Part shown: one piece after another, positions 15,968 through 47,576 of the stretch
Numbering within the stretch: the stretch's first letter is position 1
Layout: the number at the start of each line of letters is the position of its first letter
Assembly (NCBI RefSeq): GCF_000143415.4
Contig: NW_003314280.1
Span: forward strand, 2,091,549 to 2,155,548
DNA length: 64,000 bases
DNA from: Selaginella moellendorffii
Lineage: Eukaryota; Plantae; Lycopodiophyta
Direction of reading: 5' to 3'
Notes under the pieces: generated by a model
What the model was told of the DNA's origin: nothing
The model's database searches: none
Seen by the model: only the letters and a program-made list of their open reading frames with translations
Made by a program: the position numbers and the translations under genes

Positions 15968-16086
15968 GGCGCGACGCGACGCGATGGGAAAGAAAAATCG
16001 AGGAAATGTGGGCGCGCTACTAAATTTACTAACAAGCAAAGGTCTTAAATATTTGGTCCACGGCGGGGATTCTCAACTATAGTCCG

Positions 16087-16248
16087 ACGTGGCCACTACG
16101 GTACCGAGGTGGCGGTCCCGAGCCGCCTTTTCCCTTCATATCATCGGGACGATTCCGTAGGTTCGCGGATGAAAAGCCGGGAATATGTCATGTCCATGTG
16201 GCACGTGCCCGGCACACGCCACCATGCGCTGCCGTGTGCCAACGTGGC
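16087..16248. promoter_or_regulatory. ABRE/G-box cluster upstream of SLC19-like copy 1
   Basis: ACGTGGC 16087, CACGTG 16202 and ACGTGGC 16242, all within 300 bp of ATG 15967. Confidence 0.45.
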
Positions 16249-16418
16249 GCCAAAATGGAAAGTTTGGATTGGTGAAGGAACGGTTGGAATCGCCTTAGTT
16301 TAGATTTCTGAAGAAGTTTTTTCCTTGTGTGGGAGAGATGGCAATCGATCAAGGGACGCAAGAGGTGGTGACAGCGTGGCCACAATGACCACAACTTGAG
16401 GTTGGGTGACCATTAACA

Positions 16419-18352
16419 CTTATGCTTGGTTATTTTAGAATATTTTTAATTGATAAACATGTTTATAATTCATAAACTTTCCTAAACACTTTCTAGTATA
16501 TTCTAGTATATTTTACCATTTAATGGTTTATATACAATAAGATTAGTTTTGTGTTATAAATTAGATTTTTTAAAAAACTTTTTATAATTTATACTCCAAA
16601 ACTATAAAGTAGAATTAGACTGAAATCTTGATTACTATAATCATGCAATCTAATTACATAAAAATACATAATTACATAGTTATAAAAATTATTTATTATA
16701 GAAATCAGTAATCAAATATAAATTAGACCTTTTACCAAACTTTATTTTAAAATATAATCATTTTTCCTCCCACGGTTAAACTATAAATATTTTTTTTAAA
16801 AGCTTTAAAATATGTGTAGAAGTTTACTGCATTTACTTATCATCATCATAGGAATTTAAAATATACTTTATTTATTAAATAATTATAATTAGATTGTATT
16901 AAAATTATAGATATAAATTACACTTGAAGAGAAATAAAAAATTTATACATAAACAATAATACATCAAATTTTGTATATAAACTAAAATGAACAAACAAGT
17001 TTTTACATTAAATTTTAAGTAAAAAAAATTTAATCTTATCTGAAATATTCAAGACAAAAGAAACTTAAAAATAAAATTTTTACAAGGAAAATAAATAAAA
17101 TCAATAATTAACTAAAATAAACCTTTCAAAACATGTAATTTAGTTAAAATTAAATAAAAATAATAATATAATTTTAAAGTTAATATTAATTTTTAATATA
17201 TTTTATAATAAATCCTATTTGTATAGTGTGTAAAGGGCTTTTACAATTCATAAATTTCAATAAAGATGTCAAAAAATCTTGATTTCTATGTTAAAATTGT
17301 AGTTAAAGTGATCAAATTAACCATAGGTTATTGGCTACTAGGTGATCCGTTACTTCAATGAAAAATAACATCATTATTAAATATTAATTAATTAGGGGTT
17401 TATGTGTTACATTATACTTATTTATGCATATAGATTTAAAATTTAAATTTGGTCGTATGGCCATAAATTTACATTTAAAAAAATCCACCAAAATTTTATC
17501 ATTTATCATCATGCTACAAAAGAATGTTTTTTATACTAAAATAATTTTTAAAATATGTAATCTATATAATTTTAAAATATAAAAATTTAAAATAAAAAAC
17601 CTTTCAAGTTTTATATTATGTTTAAATTTCTTTCTTCCACTTATCAATTAGTTAAATTTTACAATTTATTAAAAAAAAAGTTAAAATTTTATTTTAATAC
17701 TTGACTTATAATGGTGTTAATTTAAATAGAACATACTCATTAAATTCTCAAGCCCTTTCAACAAACGTGAGCGTTAAGTGATTGATTGTGCCGAACCAGT
17801 AAACCCTAAACTCTAAACCTAGTTGGATTGTTTAGTATTAGTAATAATTCAGTTGATAAATTATATTTTAATTAAAGAATTGAACTTTTTTTGTTTAAAA
17901 CAAATTTTATATGAAGTTGGAGAAATATTTAAGCATAAAGATAAACCACTTTAAAATAAATATTATTATATTATATTTATTGTATATATATACATTGGAT
18001 ATATGTCAAAATAAAATTTAGTAAGAGTTCCAAAAACTTACTTAAATAGTGATTTTTCTATTATACTTCACAAAAAACTTTCTAAGATGCAACTACTTTT
18101 TTTTGTATAATAAATTTGTTTTTATAGTATTTATATTGTAAGTGATTATAATCCAATTGTACTCTTTTATACTTTGGAGTGTTAGAGTATAAGTTTCATT
18201 TACAAAATATGTACATGATTGTGTTTATATAAAAAAAATTATATAATTTTTTCATTATATTAAAGAATAAACTAAGAAGTGTTTAGGGGAGTTTATATGA
18301 GTTATAAAAATGTTTAAAAATTATAAATACAAAATTAATTTAAATACATAAC
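16419..18352. mobile_element. Very AT-rich non-coding insert with long degenerate terminal inverted repeats (foldback/Mutator-like non-autonomous element)
   Basis: Left AAACATGTTTATAATTCATAAACTTTCCTAAACACTTTCTAGT approximates the reverse complement of right ACTAAGAAGTGTTTAGGGGAGTTTATATGAGTTATAAAAATGTTT. A second matching block pairs ~16593 with ~18150-18180. Abrupt GC drop and no ORFs. Confidence 0.6.
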
Positions 18353-41049: not shown

Positions 41050-42129
41050 CTAGAAGTGTAGCACGGCTCCCTGGCAGTGGTAAAACGTAAGCAGCAGCGC
41101 TCTATACAACTGCCTGGAGTTCTTCAAATCGGTCACGTCCTCTCCGCCTTTGCTGGTGACGAAGAACGCATCGTTTCTAAACAACACGGCGGACGAAGAA
41201 TTGGAGCCGAGATCCAAGCTTGACAACGACGATGGCGACGAGGCAGCGAACGGGAGAAAGTAGCGCGACACGATCCCGACCTCCTTCCAACCGTGTTCTT
41301 TGTCATCGTCAAGCCTCCCCACGTACCCAGCCTGATTGATCACGTATAAGTGATCGCCAGTCGCCACGAACTCGCCCTCGCGGAGATTTCCCTCCAAACT
41401 TCTCTCGAGTTTCCACCGCCCGGTGTCGCTGCTGCTGCTGCTGCTGCCACTACTCCTGGGATCGAAAACGAGCACCCTCCTGTTCCTGCCGGCCCGCCCC
41501 TTGACGTAAAGTTTGCTCTGGAACACCGCGAAGCTCTCGATGTGGTTGAAGCCAAACGGCATCGATTCCAGCAGCGTCCACTTGTCCAGCTCGCTGTCGT
41601 AGGCCTCTGTACTTTGCTCGTTGTCGCAACCACCGGCAACGTACAAGGTCCCCTCGATGAAACCGCACGCAAAGTAGGACCTTGCGATCTTCATCCTGGA
41701 TCCGGTCGTCCATCTGCTCGTCGCCGCGTCGAAAATGGTCACTTCCGAGTGGTTTTGAAACTCTATCCCATCGTGACTGGCCGACGATCCCCCGAGGACG
41801 AACAGGCGGTGACCCTGGCTCGCACAGCCGACTCCCATCAGGTCCAAGTGTTTCTCTGCTTCCATCGGGCCTTTGATCCTGTGGCTGGCGGCCGAGTTGA
41901 AATCATAAGCGAGGAGCCGGGCGGACTTGTGCAAGCGGGAGTTCCTTGGTACAACGAGGACCAGCCAGTCGTCCACGAGGAGGTGCCTCTGGCGCAGGAG
42001 ATAAAACTGCTTGCTGCTCACGAGCTCGTTCCAAGCCTTGGAAACGCATCGGATCCTGAGAAGGGAGAACTTTGGCAGCCGAATCAAGCACTGGAGCGCT
42101 ATGTCATCTGGGAGACCGGGTATCACCAT
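41050..42129 (-). CDS. F-box/kelch-repeat protein
   Basis: IPGLPDDIALQCLIRLP...VSKAW F-box; kelch motifs LFVLGG and MKIARSYFACG..LYVAGG..EAYDSELDKW. Confidence 0.92.
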   Translation of the reverse strand: MVIPGLPDDIALQCLIRLPKFSLLRIRCVSKAWNELVSSKQFYLLRQRHLLVDDWLVLVVPRNSRLHKSARLLAYDFNSAASHRIKGPMEAEKHLDLMGVGCASQGHRLFVLGGSSASHDGIEFQNHSEVTIFDAATSRWTTGSRMKIARSYFACGFIEGTLYVAGGCDNEQSTEAYDSELDKWTLLESMPFGFNHIESFAVFQSKLYVKGRAGRNRRVLVFDPRSSGSSSSSSDTGRWKLERSLEGNLREGEFVATGDHLYVINQAGYVGRLDDDKEHGWKEVGIVSRYFLPFAASSPSSLSSLDLGSNSSSAVLFRNDAFFVTSKGGEDVTDLKNSRQLYRALLLTFYHCQGAVLHF

Positions 42130-42430
42130 GCTGTGCAAAAATGAATCATCTGCTGCCTGCCGTGAGATGAGAGGAGTGAATCTTGCTCTTCCTAACTTGC
42201 AACTTCGGAAAAGAAGAAATTTGTACCTGTCAGTCTACCTGAATTTGCTCGTCAGTGACTGGTTGGTGCAATTGCGCGTCCAGAGCCAAGGACAGCAACG
42301 GGTGGAGCTACGAAGGTCACGTTACTAGGAAGGAGCGTTGACAAACTCACTGGAACAAAAAAGTTTAGCGAAAGAAAGTTCGACGAGAAGAAAAGAGTAA
42401 AGAGAGAAAAAAGAAAGCTAAAAGCTCTTT

Positions 42431-43643
42431 TCAACTGTTTGCCTTCTTGAGCAGAGACTTCCTCCAGGCCCAGTAGTTCCGGCGCATCGAATCTGCCACT
42501 TCCAGGCGCTCACAGACTTGTCTCGCAAGTTGCTCTGGCGACAATCCCTCCGAGGGGAAGTCCAGCAGCCTGCAATCGTCAGCTGTGGGCCGATAACCAC
42601 GGCATAGCAGGTCCAGGAGAAAGTTGAGCGCGTGGACAGAGATCTTGTCCTTGGCAAGCTCTTCGATGCAGACACGGATGACCTCCGGACTTCTCACAAG
42701 AGCGCTCTTGTCGTCCTTAAACAAGCCCCCCAAGTATCTCCATGCACTTTCATTGTCCGGGGCGAACCTGATCGCGTCGCAGCAAAACTTGAGCTCGGAA
42801 TCTTTGGCAGCAACGAGACCACCTATCGCAGGACTGTTGGTGATCACAAAGAAGCGCTGTAGGGAGCACAAGGGAAACACCATAAGGGACAAGCATTGTT
42901 GTCTAGGATATATACCTGGTTCCACACAGAGTTGTTGTACACATCTTCCTGAAGCATCTGGACGAGAAACTCGAGCTCTTTCTCCCAACCTCCAAGTTTT
43001 TCCAGAACCCACTGCACATTCATACCATAAATGAATGAGAACGACTGAATCAGTATAGTACTTCTTTACCTGTCTGTGTGACCAGGCGTGATAATTCTTG
43101 CCATCTTCGCTGAGAATATTGGCCGTGAATTCCAACTCAGCGTTCATACAAGCCGGTCCGCGCTTTTCAGCTAGCCATCGCCGGTGATGCCTGCGTGATA
43201 AAAGAAGAGAAAAGGTTCGGTTAGTGCTTTTAGACGAACCAAACACATACCAGATTTGATAGTTTTTAGCATTGTCCTCTGCCATATTCTCGATGAAGTC
43301 CATTTCTTTATCCAAATCTCCTTCGATAGATTCAAGAACTAGCCTCCGAAAATGCCAAACCTGGAGAAGAAAGATCAGATCCAAGAAAATACAAGAAGGG
43401 CCTTACCGTGTAGTTCCCAGGATTCAAGGCAATGACTTCTCCAGTGAGATTCAGTGCTCGTGCCGAGCGCTCGTCTCTGGCAACCACAGCTCGAAAGTAA
43501 TCCATGACTTCCCGGAACTGGCTTGTGTAAGCGATTGGCACAACAGGATTTGGACCATCGTCCTGAGGAATAGGCTCTACATCCTTCCACTCTTCACGCT
43601 CCCTGAGCGGGATCCACACTTCCTCGTCGTCGTCACTACTCAT
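42431..43643 (-). CDS. FTA: Protein farnesyltransferase/geranylgeranyltransferase-I alpha subunit
   Basis: [28 protein letters not shown]|VWHFRR, KNYQIW|[31 protein letters not shown]. Confidence 0.95.
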
Positions 43644-43732
43644 TTGGAGCTGGAATCCATCCACCACCAACACCCAAGTCAGGCACACCCAAGCTCTCCC
43701 TCAGGAAAACTTACGTGAGTTTTACGTAGTTT

Positions 43733-44037
43733 TCACGAAATGTGCTTGGGCTGTGAGCGTGGCGCGGCGAATTTCCAAGCATCCGCGTCCAGGAGCTTCT
43801 CCTCCTTGCGAAGAGACTGGAGAAGATCCTCGAGAAGCGCTGAGTCCACACAGTGCGATGCTCTCAACGCGATATTTCCAGAAATCCAAAGACAACCCCA
43901 CCTCTCTCGGTCTCGGCCTTGCGATCCTCCTTGAGCGTCAGCTCCTCGGCAAATCGCTCGAACAGAGAATCCTCCACCACTGCCGCCGCGGAGGAAGACG
44001 AAGCTCGCGCAGGCGATCCGGTCACGCCGCTCTGCAT
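43733..44037 (-). CDS. SAMBA: SAMBA-like plant APC/C regulator (~80 aa, 2 exons)
   Basis: Exons 44037-43902 and 43839-43733 give MQSGVTGSPARASSS...EDRKAETERALLEDLLQSLRKEEKLLDADAWKFAAPRSQPKHIS. This resembles the SAMBA pattern SPA.S...RK.E...L..DL...L.KE.K.L..D.W.F..PRS. Confidence 0.78.
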
Positions 44038-44090
44038 CGCTCCATCCAAAAACCCTAGCCCTCCCTCTATTTGAAATATCAAAGCAATGA

Positions 44091-45782
44091 ATGGTACGCA
44101 ACCTCGCCAAGAACACGCACACCACGGCGGCCTTGGATCCACCAGAGATCGCTTCCTACGCATCCACTCTCCGGCAATGCAATCGCTCGCGAAATCTGGC
44201 CCTGGGAAGGACAATCCACAAGAAACTCCGAGAGCTCGGGCTGGATCGGGTCACGAATCTCAGCAATCTCCTCATCCAGATGTATGGGAGCTGCCACTGC
44301 GTCGCGGAGGCGTCCCGGGTCTTCGCCACGATCAAGGAGCCCAACGATTTCTCCTGGAACGTGATGCTCACAGCGTATGCCCGAAATGGGCATCTTGCGG
44401 AGGCGCGGCGGTGCTTCGATCGAATGCCGCGCGCGTGGAGAGGAGTCTTCACCTTCAACACCCTCATGCTGGCCTACGCGCGGAAGGGAGACCTCCGCGA
44501 GGCGAGAGATCTCTTCGATCGCATGCTCTCTCGCAACACATTCTCGTGGAACGCGATGATCTCCTCCTACGCACGCGGCGGCAATCCTCGCGAGGCGCTG
44601 GAGCTCTGGAGAGCGATGGACATCGACCCCAATAGCATCACGCTCGCCAGTGCGCTCCACGCTTGCTGCGAGCTCGCCGATCTGGACGAGGGCAGGAAGA
44701 TCCACGCGAGGATCAAACACTCGGGGCTGGAGTCCAACATCATCCTGGCCACCGCGCTCGTCAATCTCTACGGGCGATGCGGCCGCGTGATGGACGCCCA
44801 GGAGATCTTCCACTCCATGGCCGATTCACAGGACGTGGTCCTGTGGACCGCGATGCAAATGGCGCTGGCGCGCAACGGCCGATTGATCCAGGCCAGCGCC
44901 CTCTTCGATCGGATGCCGCGCCGGGACGTGGTCTCCTGGACGAACATGCTGGTGGCGCACGCCAGCGATGGCGATCTGGGCCGCGCGGCTCGTATCTTCG
45001 GGGCGATGCCCGAGAGGAGCTCCGTGACCTGGACTGCGATGATCACGGCCTACGCCCAGAACGGCCGCCCGCGCGCCGCGATCCACCTCTTCCTCGCCAT
45101 GGATTGCGAGGGCTTCCCGGCCAACAGCGTCACATTCGTCACGATCTTCGACGCTTGCTCCAGCGTCGCGGACATCGCTCTAGGCCGGAGGCTCCACGCG
45201 GAGCTCCTGGATCTGGGCGCCGGGCAGCCGCCCCAGATCGATGTCTCGCTCGGCACCGCGATCGTCAACATGTATGGCAAGTGCGGCAGTCTCTCGGAAG
45301 CGCGATCGTTCTTCGATTCCATGCCGGATCGCAATGCCTGGTCCTGGAACTCCATGCTCGCAGCGTATGCTCAGAGAGGGCAAACGCTAGCTGCCTTGGA
45401 TCTCTTCAAGCTTCTCAATCTCCACGGCCAAGATCCCGACGAGGTCTCCTTCCTCGCGCTCTTCTCTGCGTGTAGCCACGCGGGGCTCCTCCGCGATGGC
45501 CACTGCTACTTCGTGTCGATCACGCACGACTATGGGCAGCGCCTGACGATCGATCACTACGTCTGCATGATCGATCTCCTGTGCCGCGCTGGGCGGCTCG
45601 CTCACGCGGAAGAGCTCCTCCACGCCATGCCCTTCTCGCCCAGCTCCACCGCCTGGACGGCGCTGCTCAATGGGTGTGAGATGCATCGCGATGTGGAGCG
45701 AGCGCGGGGGATTCCTGGGCGAGCGCTGGGTGACGATCACGGCCCCTATGTCTTGCTCTCCAATACGATGCTCGTGTCATAG
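44091..45782 (+). CDS. PLS-class PPR protein with truncated E domain
   Basis: 563-aa intronless ORF of PPR motifs ending ACSHAGLL..HYVCMIDLLCRAG..MPFSP..PYVLLSN. Confidence 0.92.
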   Translation: MVRNLAKNTHTTAALDPPEIASYASTLRQCNRSRNLALGRTIHKKLRELGLDRVTNLSNLLIQMYGSCHCVAEASRVFATIKEPNDFSWNVMLTAYARNGHLAEARRCFDRMPRAWRGVFTFNTLMLAYARKGDLREARDLFDRMLSRNTFSWNAMISSYARGGNPREALELWRAMDIDPNSITLASALHACCELADLDEGRKIHARIKHSGLESNIILATALVNLYGRCGRVMDAQEIFHSMADSQDVVLWTAMQMALARNGRLIQASALFDRMPRRDVVSWTNMLVAHASDGDLGRAARIFGAMPERSSVTWTAMITAYAQNGRPRAAIHLFLAMDCEGFPANSVTFVTIFDACSSVADIALGRRLHAELLDLGAGQPPQIDVSLGTAIVNMYGKCGSLSEARSFFDSMPDRNAWSWNSMLAAYAQRGQTLAALDLFKLLNLHGQDPDEVSFLALFSACSHAGLLRDGHCYFVSITHDYGQRLTIDHYVCMIDLLCRAGRLAHAEELLHAMPFSPSSTAWTALLNGCEMHRDVERARGIPGRALGDDHGPYVLLSNTMLVS

Positions 45783-47576
45783 ATCATCGCTAGAGGCACA
45801 GATCTTCGCGAGCGAGATGTAAGGTGAGGAGCTACCGGGGGTCATCTCGGAGATCAAGCTCGCAGCTCTCCAAGCTCCCTCGGTTTTCATCCCACCAAGC
45901 GAGCAAGCTCCAAGCAGCGCTCCCCAGGTGGGATGATCCGGGTGGTATGGCATGCTATCGATAAGCTCCTCGGCCGCCACCAATCGCCCAGATCGAGCCA
46001 GGAGATTGACAAGCCACGCGTAGTGCTCCGCCTTTGCTGCGATCCCAAAGTCCACAGCCATGGACGTCCAGAGCTCACATCCCCGCTCGAGCAGCCCCTC
46101 GTAAGCACACGCCGAGAGAACCCCCAGGAACGTCACGTCGTGTGGATCGACTCCTTGGTGGATCATGTCCACGAAGAGCTGGAGGGCGCGCTCCCGATTA
46201 CCGCTCTGGACGTCGGCGGTGATCATCGCGGTCCACGACACCGAGTCGCGCTCCTCCATGGCATCAAAGTGCCTCTTTGCGTTCTCGAAGCTGCCACACT
46301 TGGCATACATTGAGATGAAGGAGTTTCCAAGCTCGACGCTCCCCCGGCTTCCTCCAATCTCCTCGTCGATGAGAATTCCGGGAGTGAGCGCCGAGGCCTG
46401 CGAGCACGCATCGATCAGGCACAGGAAAGTTATCCCGTTAGGACGAACTCCCTCGATGGTCATGAGCTTGAACAGCTCCAGCGCCTCGATCGCTCGCTCG
46501 CTCCGCGTGTAGCAAGTGAGCATCGCGTTCCACGACACCAGGTCGCGCTCCGGCATGCCGTCGAAGATCCTCCTCGTCTCCTCGAAGTGCGCCATCTGCG
46601 AACACGCCAGAAACATGCTCGTCCATGACCGGATGTTCCACTGTGCCATTTTTTCAAACACCAGCCTCGCGCTCTCCAGATCGTTTCCCTGGCCGTAAGC
46701 AGCGATCAGCGCGTTCCAGGATCCGGCGTCTCGGTCCATCGCGAGGAAGATCTTCCTGGCTTGATCGATGTCTCCGGCTTCGGCATACCCGAACAGCATG
46801 CTCGTCCAAGTGATGGAGTTCGGACAAGGGACGCTCTGGAACAGCCTCCTGGCCTCCTCGAGCATTCCAGTGCGCGTGTAGGCGGGAAAGATCGAGTTCC
46901 ACGACACCGAGTCTCGGGCTGGAATGCGATCGAAGAGTGCCCGCGCTGCTCGAGCATCCCCAGCCTGGGCATTTGCCGTGATTAGAGCATTCCATGACAC
47001 AATGTTTCTCTCGGGCATTTTGTCGAATAGAAACTTTGCTTCCTGGAGCTGGCCAGTTCGGGAGAGCCCGGAAAGCAAAGCCGTCCACGAGACTACGTTG
47101 ACGACAGGCATTCTTGAAAAGAAGCTGCTCGCTTCAAGACAATCCCCGGACTGGGCATATGCAGAGACCATAGAGTTCCAAGACGCAACATCGCGCTGGG
47201 CCATTTTATCAAACATTTCTCTTGACTCGGCAATGTTTCCAGAATCCGCTAACGCAACCATGACCGCATTGCAAGAAACCGCGCTGTGCTCTGGCATTTT
47301 CCAGAACCATTTCCCGGCCTCGTTAAGATACCCGTTTTGGGCAAGAAGTGCCACCATGATTGTCCACGAGAAAACGTTTCTCCAGCACAACCTCTCAAAC
47401 GCTGCTCTGGCTTCGTCCAGGCTTCCCAGCCGCCCAAACATTTGGATGATGTGGTTGCCCAGAAACTTTTGGCTGTCCAGGCCCTTCCTTGCGAGCTCCC
47501 AGTGCAATTGCCTTCCATCTGATAGATGGTTACAAGCTTTCAACTTCAAAGCATAATCAGCCTCCACAAGCCTCAT
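45777..47576 (-). CDS. PLS-class PPR protein rich in tandem short (S/SS-type) motifs, with E domain
   Basis: 599-aa intronless ORF with many ~31-aa repeats (FDKMP.R.VSWN); ends HYAWLVNLLARSG..MPYHP..SPYISLAKI. Confidence 0.92.
   Translation of the reverse strand: MRLVEADYALKLKACNHLSDGRQLHWELARKGLDSQKFLGNHIIQMFGRLGSLDEARAAFERLCWRNVFSWTIMVALLAQNGYLNEAGKWFWKMPEHSAVSCNAVMVALADSGNIAESREMFDKMAQRDVASWNSMVSAYAQSGDCLEASSFFSRMPVVNVVSWTALLSGLSRTGQLQEAKFLFDKMPERNIVSWNALITANAQAGDARAARALFDRIPARDSVSWNSIFPAYTRTGMLEEARRLFQSVPCPNSITWTSMLFGYAEAGDIDQARKIFLAMDRDAGSWNALIAAYGQGNDLESARLVFEKMAQWNIRSWTSMFLACSQMAHFEETRRIFDGMPERDLVSWNAMLTCYTRSERAIEALELFKLMTIEGVRPNGITFLCLIDACSQASALTPGILIDEEIGGSRGSVELGNSFISMYAKCGSFENAKRHFDAMEERDSVSWTAMITADVQSGNRERALQLFVDMIHQGVDPHDVTFLGVLSACAYEGLLERGCELWTSMAVDFGIAAKAEHYAWLVNLLARSGRLVAAEELIDSMPYHPDHPTWGALLGACSLGGMKTEGAWRAASLISEMTPGSSSPYISLAKICASSDDL

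Follow-up and report, generated by a model that had tools for sequence, protein, structure and literature searches.

In the land-plant lineage, it is very rare for a nuclear mRNA to be bicistronic and give rise to two conserved proteins unrelated to each other. The textbook case is CDC26-TTM3, described as a bicistronic mRNA of plants and green algae in later papers that summarise Lorenzo-Orts et al. 2019 (PMC6973038, PMC7943633, PMC11291117). Polycistronic nuclear loci of green algae form a wider class (PMC7896298), for which a leaky-scanning model has been put forward (PMC11291117). Here we analyse a 64,000-nt stretch of the Selaginella moellendorffii genome (contig NW_003314280.1, positions 2,091,549 to 2,155,548; hereafter the window, with positions counted from its first letter), in which a small open reading frame (ORF) resembling SAMBA, a regulator of the APC/C (anaphase-promoting complex/cyclosome), stands immediately upstream of the gene for the alpha subunit of farnesyltransferase and geranylgeranyltransferase type I (FTase/GGTase-I; FTA). 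Like CDC26-TTM3 as those summaries describe it, the arrangement places a small (65–80 aa) APC/C-associated ORF 1 shortly upstream of, and on one strand with, an unrelated enzyme. We put the probability that SAMBA and FTA form one transcription unit with a bicistronic RNA in this species at roughly 0.65, and the pair looks like a further locus of the CDC26-TTM3 kind, a second ancient two-protein plant mRNA.

Both genes lie on the minus strand. Splicing of that strand by script gives a SAMBA-like ORF (44037–43733) that opens with the ATG at 44037, runs through two exons and ends in the TGA at 43735–43733, with a product of 80 aa. The coding part of exon 1 (44037–43902) is followed by a 62-nt GT..AG intron in phase 1 (43901–43840), whose joint, 43839|43902, is present in RNA contigs of three of four runs, and the coding part of exon 2 (43839–43733, including the stop) holds the most conserved block, LRKEEKLLDADAWKFAAPRS. 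FTA (43643–42431) has its ATG at 43643–43641, five exons and a product of 329 aa. In genomic DNA, 89 nt separate the SAMBA stop from the FTA ATG: the first 18 nt of the spacer (43732–43715), which form the 3′ end of the exon shared with SAMBA exon 2; a 65-nt intercistronic intron (43714–43650) with GTAAGT at 43714, CTGAC at 43682–43678 and a CAG ending at 43650; and the last 6 nt (43649–43644), between the acceptor and the FTA ATG. The intron holds one ATG, which is lost on splicing, and the spliced spacer of 24 nt (18 + 6) is in frame and without a stop. An initial annotation of the window, made from the letters alone, had given this layout, from both ORFs and the 89-bp gap to the 65-nt intron, its branch site and the 24 in-frame nucleotides, and all of its coordinates were correct on the minus strand.

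The locus is represented in public RNA data from Selaginella, with 20 runs containing 0.25–0.73 of its sampled words, in line with spliced RNA. For four runs, each from a different study, contigs were placed on 42100–44400, and all seven predicted introns appear in them as contig joints, CT..AC on the plus strand and thus GT..AG on the minus strand. The joint of the intercistronic intron, 43649|43715, was found in all four runs, bearing out the 43714/43650 junction that the initial annotation had proposed, and a single contig has the SAMBA stop and FTA start within a span of 30 nt. The bin holding this intron has a depth of 12/77 of the contig depth in each run, which is exactly its exonic share; no contig that leaves the intercistronic intron unspliced exists in the four runs, because the bin depth is fully accounted for by exon. 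In the mature RNA, therefore, 24 nt separate the stop of SAMBA from the start of FTA. With 18 nt from the SAMBA stop to the donor, there is no space for a poly(A) site and a promoter: any SAMBA-encoding RNA continues into FTA, and an FTA RNA using the intercistronic intron begins inside or upstream of SAMBA. At the SAMBA intron, a minor contig of run X4 (43812–43914) retains the intron, at a depth of 17 versus 67–146 for its neighbour contigs.

Since Pfam has no model that matches the 80-aa ORF, its identity was taken from a profile search and from cluster names. The ORF is 55–68% identical to hypothetical proteins of 83–88 aa from Marchantia, Riccia and Diphasiastrum. A profile built from 12 relatives (bryophyte, lycophyte and fern; 63–68% identity to the window ORF) and searched against 1.8 billion cluster representatives matched 125 of them, and clusters matched at E values from 2e-18 to 4e-12 have members to which RefSeq or UniProt gives the name 'protein SAMBA', from Cryptomeria, Magnolia, Citrus, Zingiber, Curcuma, Acorus and Ensete. 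The alignment shows two conserved blocks and a low-complexity Ser/Ala stretch, the blocks common to the family being DRK.E(T/A)..AL and L.KE.K.LD.D.WKF..PRS, and conservation among the relatives spans the full length, not only the C terminus. Three SAMBA motifs, SHR1, LCR and SHR2, were reportedly defined by Eloy and colleagues in 2012. The position of the SAMBA intron is common to Selaginella, Marchantia, Diphasiastrum and Adiantum. By profile and alignment, the 80-aa ORF is a true SAMBA orthologue, in agreement with the name that the initial annotation had given it.

Seed-plant SAMBA proteins (AT1G32310 and SlSAMBA; PMC12392944, PMC7943633) have the same conserved blocks, an N-terminal Ser/Ala-rich stretch and a similar size (80–130 aa). 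The proteins differ at their C termini: those of Selaginella, liverworts, clubmosses and mosses end 4–6 residues past PRSQ, whereas fern and seed-plant SAMBA extend with (I/L)HL(I/T)S-RPG and further residues. That SAMBA binds APC3b/APC/C and promotes the turnover of A-type cyclins is known for Arabidopsis, maize and tomato only (PMC7943633, PMC12392944). No Selaginella SAMBA protein is on record in the protein collections searched, an exact look-up of the window product included, and the gene appears to be unannotated in Selaginella; exact look-ups of Pteridium P0003 and Physcomitrium P0012 found neither on record. Chara braunii possesses SAMBA homologues, so the family predates land plants and is older than the description "seed-plant specific" allows. 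In Marchantia (L001, position 6146), the annotated SAMBA protein needs a GC..AG intron of 217 nt, with the donor GCGCGT, at the conserved position.

The downstream gene is identified by its domain and by a recorded protein. FTA exon 1 (43643–43407) is 100% identical to residues 1–79 of SELMODRAFT_228128 and the coding part of exon 5 (42856–42431, stop 42431–42433) to residues 189–329, with a Pfam PPTA match (PF01239) in the latter, and by this identity the window is S. moellendorffii or a plant that cannot be told from it; exons 2 (43360–43251), 3 (43190–43070) and 4 (43011–42916) were placed by the splicing script and the RNA contigs, and the introns between the five exons are 46–60 nt. SELMODRAFT_228128, a 329-aa protein of S. 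moellendorffii, bears the UniRef name FTase/GGTase-I alpha and clusters with named orthologues of other plants, and the FTA tree tracks plant phylogeny. By homology, then, the downstream gene is the FTase/GGTase-I alpha subunit, and its earlier designation as a prenyltransferase alpha gene agrees with both the PPTA match and the SELMODRAFT_228128 identity.

The order SAMBA-then-FTA recurs in other plants. In Marchantia polymorpha, SAMBA (Mp5g11230) is followed by FTA on the same strand after a gap of 96 nt, the two genes being annotated separately; two further liverwort samples (genomic contigs, including L006) have the same pair with a 163-nt gap, and Diphasiastrum complanatum has it with a 229-nt gap, despite a SAMBA intron of 2.5 kb and an FTA gene of more than 7 kb. 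In Diphasiastrum, chromosome 14 carries another FTA copy (O6H91_14G077800, P0205), besides the SAMBA-adjacent one on chromosome 19 (L003). Both ORFs stand uninterrupted on a GC-rich contig of 1,882 nt (L009), 253 nt apart, and contigs of about 2.0–2.2 kb from three runs (L010–L012) carry one and the same locus with a 216-nt gap; these begin 10–26 nt before the SAMBA ATG, and two of them share a 3′ end, like one mRNA. Two conserved same-strand ORFs with a short spacer, 24 nt after splicing in Selaginella and 96–253 nt in five other taxa, are thus observed.

The last two of these species are related (FTA 81% identical). Their FTA sequences group with Mesotaenium outside the land-plant clade (split support 100/99, in a tree without hornworts), their SAMBA sequences share an "AWMY" motif with Chara, and the contigs are probably from streptophyte algae. 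Between the two, dN/dS is 0.17 for SAMBA and 0.19 for FTA; by this estimate the two ORFs are under similar purifying selection. In Chara itself, no FTA was found within 10 kb downstream of the SAMBA homologue, although Chara genes are widely spread and linkage is possible.

Other lineages have the two genes apart. Among mosses, the 6 kb upstream of Ceratodon FTA hold no SAMBA, and on a moss contig (L005, SRR33208217) the 424 nt that follow SAMBA lack FTA. The SAMBA ORF of that contig (1551–1796) is uninterrupted at the shared intron position, and, provided that the contig is genomic, this moss gene may be a retrocopy that has moved. SAMBA and FTA lie on different chromosomes in the ferns Adiantum and Ceratopteris, on separate transcripts in Psilotum and on separate contigs in Cryptomeria, Magnolia and Acorus. 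The Arabidopsis FTA gene is At3g59380. Arabidopsis SAMBA is AT1G32310 (PMC12392944), and the seed-plant SAMBA gene is monocistronic, with no linkage to FTA. The expectation that the two genes would be adjacent in other seed-free plants therefore held for liverworts and Diphasiastrum and failed for mosses and ferns. Judged from these genomes and transcripts, the SAMBA-FTA arrangement is old: liverworts, two lycophyte orders and alga-like transcripts all have it, and mosses, ferns and seed plants have lost it.

In several respects this history parallels that of CDC26-TTM3 as given in the summaries cited above. Both arrangements have been conserved over very long evolutionary time, and in both the ORF 1 stop lies upstream of exon junctions, making control by nonsense-mediated decay (NMD) plausible. 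The two differ in that SAMBA is a plant-lineage APC/C regulator rather than a core subunit and its partner is a prenyltransferase alpha subunit; in that CDC26-TTM3, in the same accounts, persists in Arabidopsis, whereas SAMBA-FTA is lost in mosses, ferns and seed plants; and in that the Selaginella locus has an intron in the inter-ORF spacer. Co-translation from one mRNA is reported there as demonstrated for CDC26-TTM3, whereas SAMBA-FTA is known from sequence and RNA contigs. Compared with the green-algal loci, SAMBA-FTA likewise has a short ORF 1 (algal median about 290–600 nt), spacers of tens to a few hundred nucleotides and a non-optimal ORF 1 AUG context, and at one Chlamydomonas locus a putative APC15, a small APC/C subunit, has another gene as its partner (PMC7896298). 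Green-algal first ORFs are AUG-depleted, unlike the SAMBA ORFs of Marchantia and Diphasiastrum, and the algal loci have been proven by Iso-Seq and proteomics, whereas SAMBA-FTA is read from its sequence and contigs. SAMBA-FTA is missing from the texts of PMC7896298 and PMC11291117, in each of which 'farnesyl' and 'prenyl' occur 0 times, and no published description of the pair was found in the full-text literature on SAMBA and on bicistronic genes of Marchantia and Selaginella.

In Selaginella, transcription passes through the two-exon SAMBA ORF, and the 65-nt intron starting 18 nt past its stop is removed; if SAMBA and FTA form one unit, the mature RNA would present SAMBA as ORF 1 and FTA as ORF 2, 24 nt apart. 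The start of this RNA would be 122 nt or more upstream of the SAMBA ATG. A contig of run X5 extends to 44159 while the neighbouring pentatricopeptide repeat (PPR) gene has no depth (0 at 44179–44255), pointing to a 5′ leader no shorter than 122 nt; this minimal leader (44159–44038, minus strand) is bounded by a contig end rather than by a mapped start site, and is antisense to the first PPR codons (ATG 44091, plus strand). It contains one upstream ATG, at 44045, which opens a 7-codon mini upstream ORF (uORF; 44045–44022, minus strand, TGA 44024–44022) that overlaps the SAMBA start codon. SAMBA would be produced by ordinary cap-dependent scanning, and FTA by ribosomes that miss the SAMBA AUG, that is, by leaky scanning; in each of the five species examined, this AUG has G at −3 and lacks G at +4. 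In Selaginella, other ribosomes may translate the overlapping 7-codon uORF, skip the SAMBA AUG and reinitiate downstream. One AUG lies between the SAMBA and FTA starts in Selaginella, in a weak context and out of frame, and opens a 25-codon ORF that ends in a TGA overlapping the FTA ATG. Five exon junctions lie downstream of the SAMBA stop, which makes NMD control plausible, and the RNA is probably subject to NMD, as reported for CDC26-TTM3 (PMC11291117). The net effect would be a co-regulated output of an APC/C regulator and of the subunit shared by both CaaX prenyltransferases.

Several observations weigh against a single unit expressed in this way. The contigs that join SAMBA to FTA also extend into both the PPR gene on the opposite strand and the gene that follows downstream, and since contigs of a compact genome merge neighbours, their continuity alone is no proof of single molecules; we rejected it as such for this reason. 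In Selaginella, the AUG of FTA is in a weak context (C at −3, A at +4). Counted from one start to the other, Selaginella has 1 AUG (P ~0.15, not significant), Marchantia 6 and Diphasiastrum 10, with no depletion, and the 0 AUGs in the alga-like spacers are not significant either (P ~0.14 each, in two species that are related). The mini-uORF is without a counterpart in Marchantia or Diphasiastrum, where no upstream ATG lies within 100 nt of the SAMBA ATG. Outside Selaginella, the SAMBA and FTA cluster representatives of Calypogeia are on different contigs, a split that may reflect homeologues. Leaky scanning was also considered as a general mechanism for the pair and was set aside, its AUG-depletion test being negative or non-significant. 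The earlier proposal of a second bicistronic cell-cycle unit, expressed by reinitiation, leaky scanning or readthrough, is supported as regards the identity of both genes and the spliced RNA with the SAMBA stop 24 nt before the FTA start, and the tandem is deeply conserved; readthrough is unlikely, the frame not being conserved.

The lack of AUG depletion in Marchantia and Diphasiastrum is awkward for scanning to ORF 2, and speaks for a rival reading with two overlapping but separate units. FTA would then be made mainly from a shorter mRNA starting in SAMBA intron 1 or exon 2, the long RNA would serve SAMBA only, with FTA as a long 3′ untranslated region (UTR), and the tandem would be kept because the FTA promoter is embedded in SAMBA. 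The word depths of run X4 point partly in this direction, SAMBA exon 2 plus FTA exon 1 having a contig depth of 145.7, about twice that of SAMBA exon 1 (67.4), and the merging of neighbouring genes by contigs in Selaginella is in keeping with it too. The same run, however, has a depth of 67.7 over FTA exons 3–5, equal to that of SAMBA exon 1, so there is no clean step, and we rejected the depth comparison as a discriminator between one and two start sites. Against an internal start, the alga-like contigs of three runs begin just before the SAMBA ATG and not inside SAMBA, and a start within a 125-nt exon would need to be conserved in every lineage; even with such a start, every SAMBA-coding RNA would be structurally bicistronic. 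We regard separate units as unlikely, though a serious alternative to the single bicistronic RNA.

The position of the SAMBA ORF in the FTA 5′ leader, its conserved peptide and its stop 24–253 nt ahead of the main ORF also recall plant conserved-peptide uORFs (CPuORFs; PMC2075485), which likewise are conserved peptide ORFs in the 5′ leader of a main ORF. The ORF might accordingly act mainly in cis, to throttle the translation of FTA, rather than to supply free SAMBA protein. Unlike most CPuORFs, though, it is longer, is conserved along its whole length rather than in a C-terminal stalling motif, and exists in ferns and seed plants as an independent, trans-acting gene: the orthologue stands alone there on other chromosomes or transcripts, and the Arabidopsis and tomato proteins act in trans on the APC/C (PMC7943633, PMC12392944). 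Its dN/dS, moreover, is like that of FTA. A predominantly cis-acting role is quite improbable on this evidence.

A fusion of the two products is less credible still. The initial annotation had pointed to an alternative donor at 43736 which, read from the sequence, would end SAMBA as ...HISSK*, its TGA overlapping the FTA ATG (ATGA); readthrough across the spacer, or use of this donor, would give a SAMBA-FTA fusion or a coupled overlap. The spliced 24-nt Selaginella spacer is in frame and stop-free, as is the 96-nt Marchantia spacer, and the TGA of the internal out-of-frame 25-codon ORF overlaps the FTA ATG in a similar manner. The junction from 43736 to 43650 is nevertheless in none of the contigs of the four runs, although contigs can lose rare forms, and no SAMBA-FTA fusion protein occurs among the 125 profile matches. 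The frame from SAMBA to FTA, shared by Selaginella and Marchantia, differs in Diphasiastrum (+1), in the liverwort contig with the 163-nt gap (L006) and in the alga-like L009 (+1); because the frame relation varies among species, readthrough or fusion is very improbable. Tight packing in a very compact genome without function, which the 46–65-nt introns of the locus, the divergent PPR ATG 53 bp from the SAMBA ATG and the start of the next gene about 300 bp past the FTA stop might suggest, is already contradicted by the conservation data and has next to no likelihood, since the ordered pair was kept over very deep time in non-compact genomes, with gaps of 96–229 nt in Marchantia and the large, intron-rich Diphasiastrum genome and again in the alga-like transcripts, and since the intron between the genes forces a shared RNA.

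The genes that flank the bicistronic candidate are closely spaced. On the upstream side are two intronless genes with strong Pfam PPR matches, at 44091–45782 (plus strand, 563 aa) and 45777–47576 (minus strand, 599 aa), which converge so that their 3′ ends overlap by 6 bp. With the ATG of the first (44091) and that of SAMBA only 53 bp apart on opposite strands, the two genes would have a very small bidirectional promoter region in common, with 5′ ends that are probably mutually antisense. On the downstream side, a 70-nt intron (42156–42225, minus strand) in the 5′ leader of the next gene (ATG at about 42129) is spliced in all four runs; the ORF of this gene, 42138–41050, is F-box-like by eye, and contigs join its leader to the FTA 3′ end, which indicates overlapping UTRs or readthrough transcription. 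The RNA contigs differ from the window by single letters, in one run each, at 42737 (T>C), 42818 (A>G) and 44153 (T>C; all on the plus strand), and runs X1 and X2 share four changes at 44257–44359, inside the PPR gene; these differences are most likely alleles or a second haplotype. Elsewhere in the window, 16001–18000 is a very AT-rich stretch (GC 0.25) within DNA otherwise of 45–62% GC.

Should SAMBA-FTA be a second unit of the CDC26-TTM3 kind, a small APC/C-associated protein would again be encoded by ORF 1, as at the Chlamydomonas APC15 locus (PMC7896298), suggesting a recurring mode of expression for tiny cell-cycle proteins. It would also constitute a new link between cell-cycle proteolysis and protein prenylation. 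The pair offers a natural experiment, since liverworts and lycophytes retain it while mosses, ferns and seed plants have it broken up, and it is directly testable in Marchantia polymorpha, with Mp5g11230 and the adjacent FTA gene. We tentatively consider, as a possibility that we hold less probable than its opposite, that the dicistron is ancestral for land plants and their closest algal relatives: SAMBA would have started out as the first cistron of the prenyltransferase-alpha mRNA, or remained so for a long time, and been freed, together with its C-terminal extension, only in euphyllophytes, and separately in mosses, and the coupling would set the ratio of an APC/C brake to CaaX-prenylation capacity. 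In Arabidopsis, loss of SAMBA or of FTA enlarges meristems or organs. If the ancestral-dicistron reading is true, the coupling of the two genes would be a built-in growth-control module.

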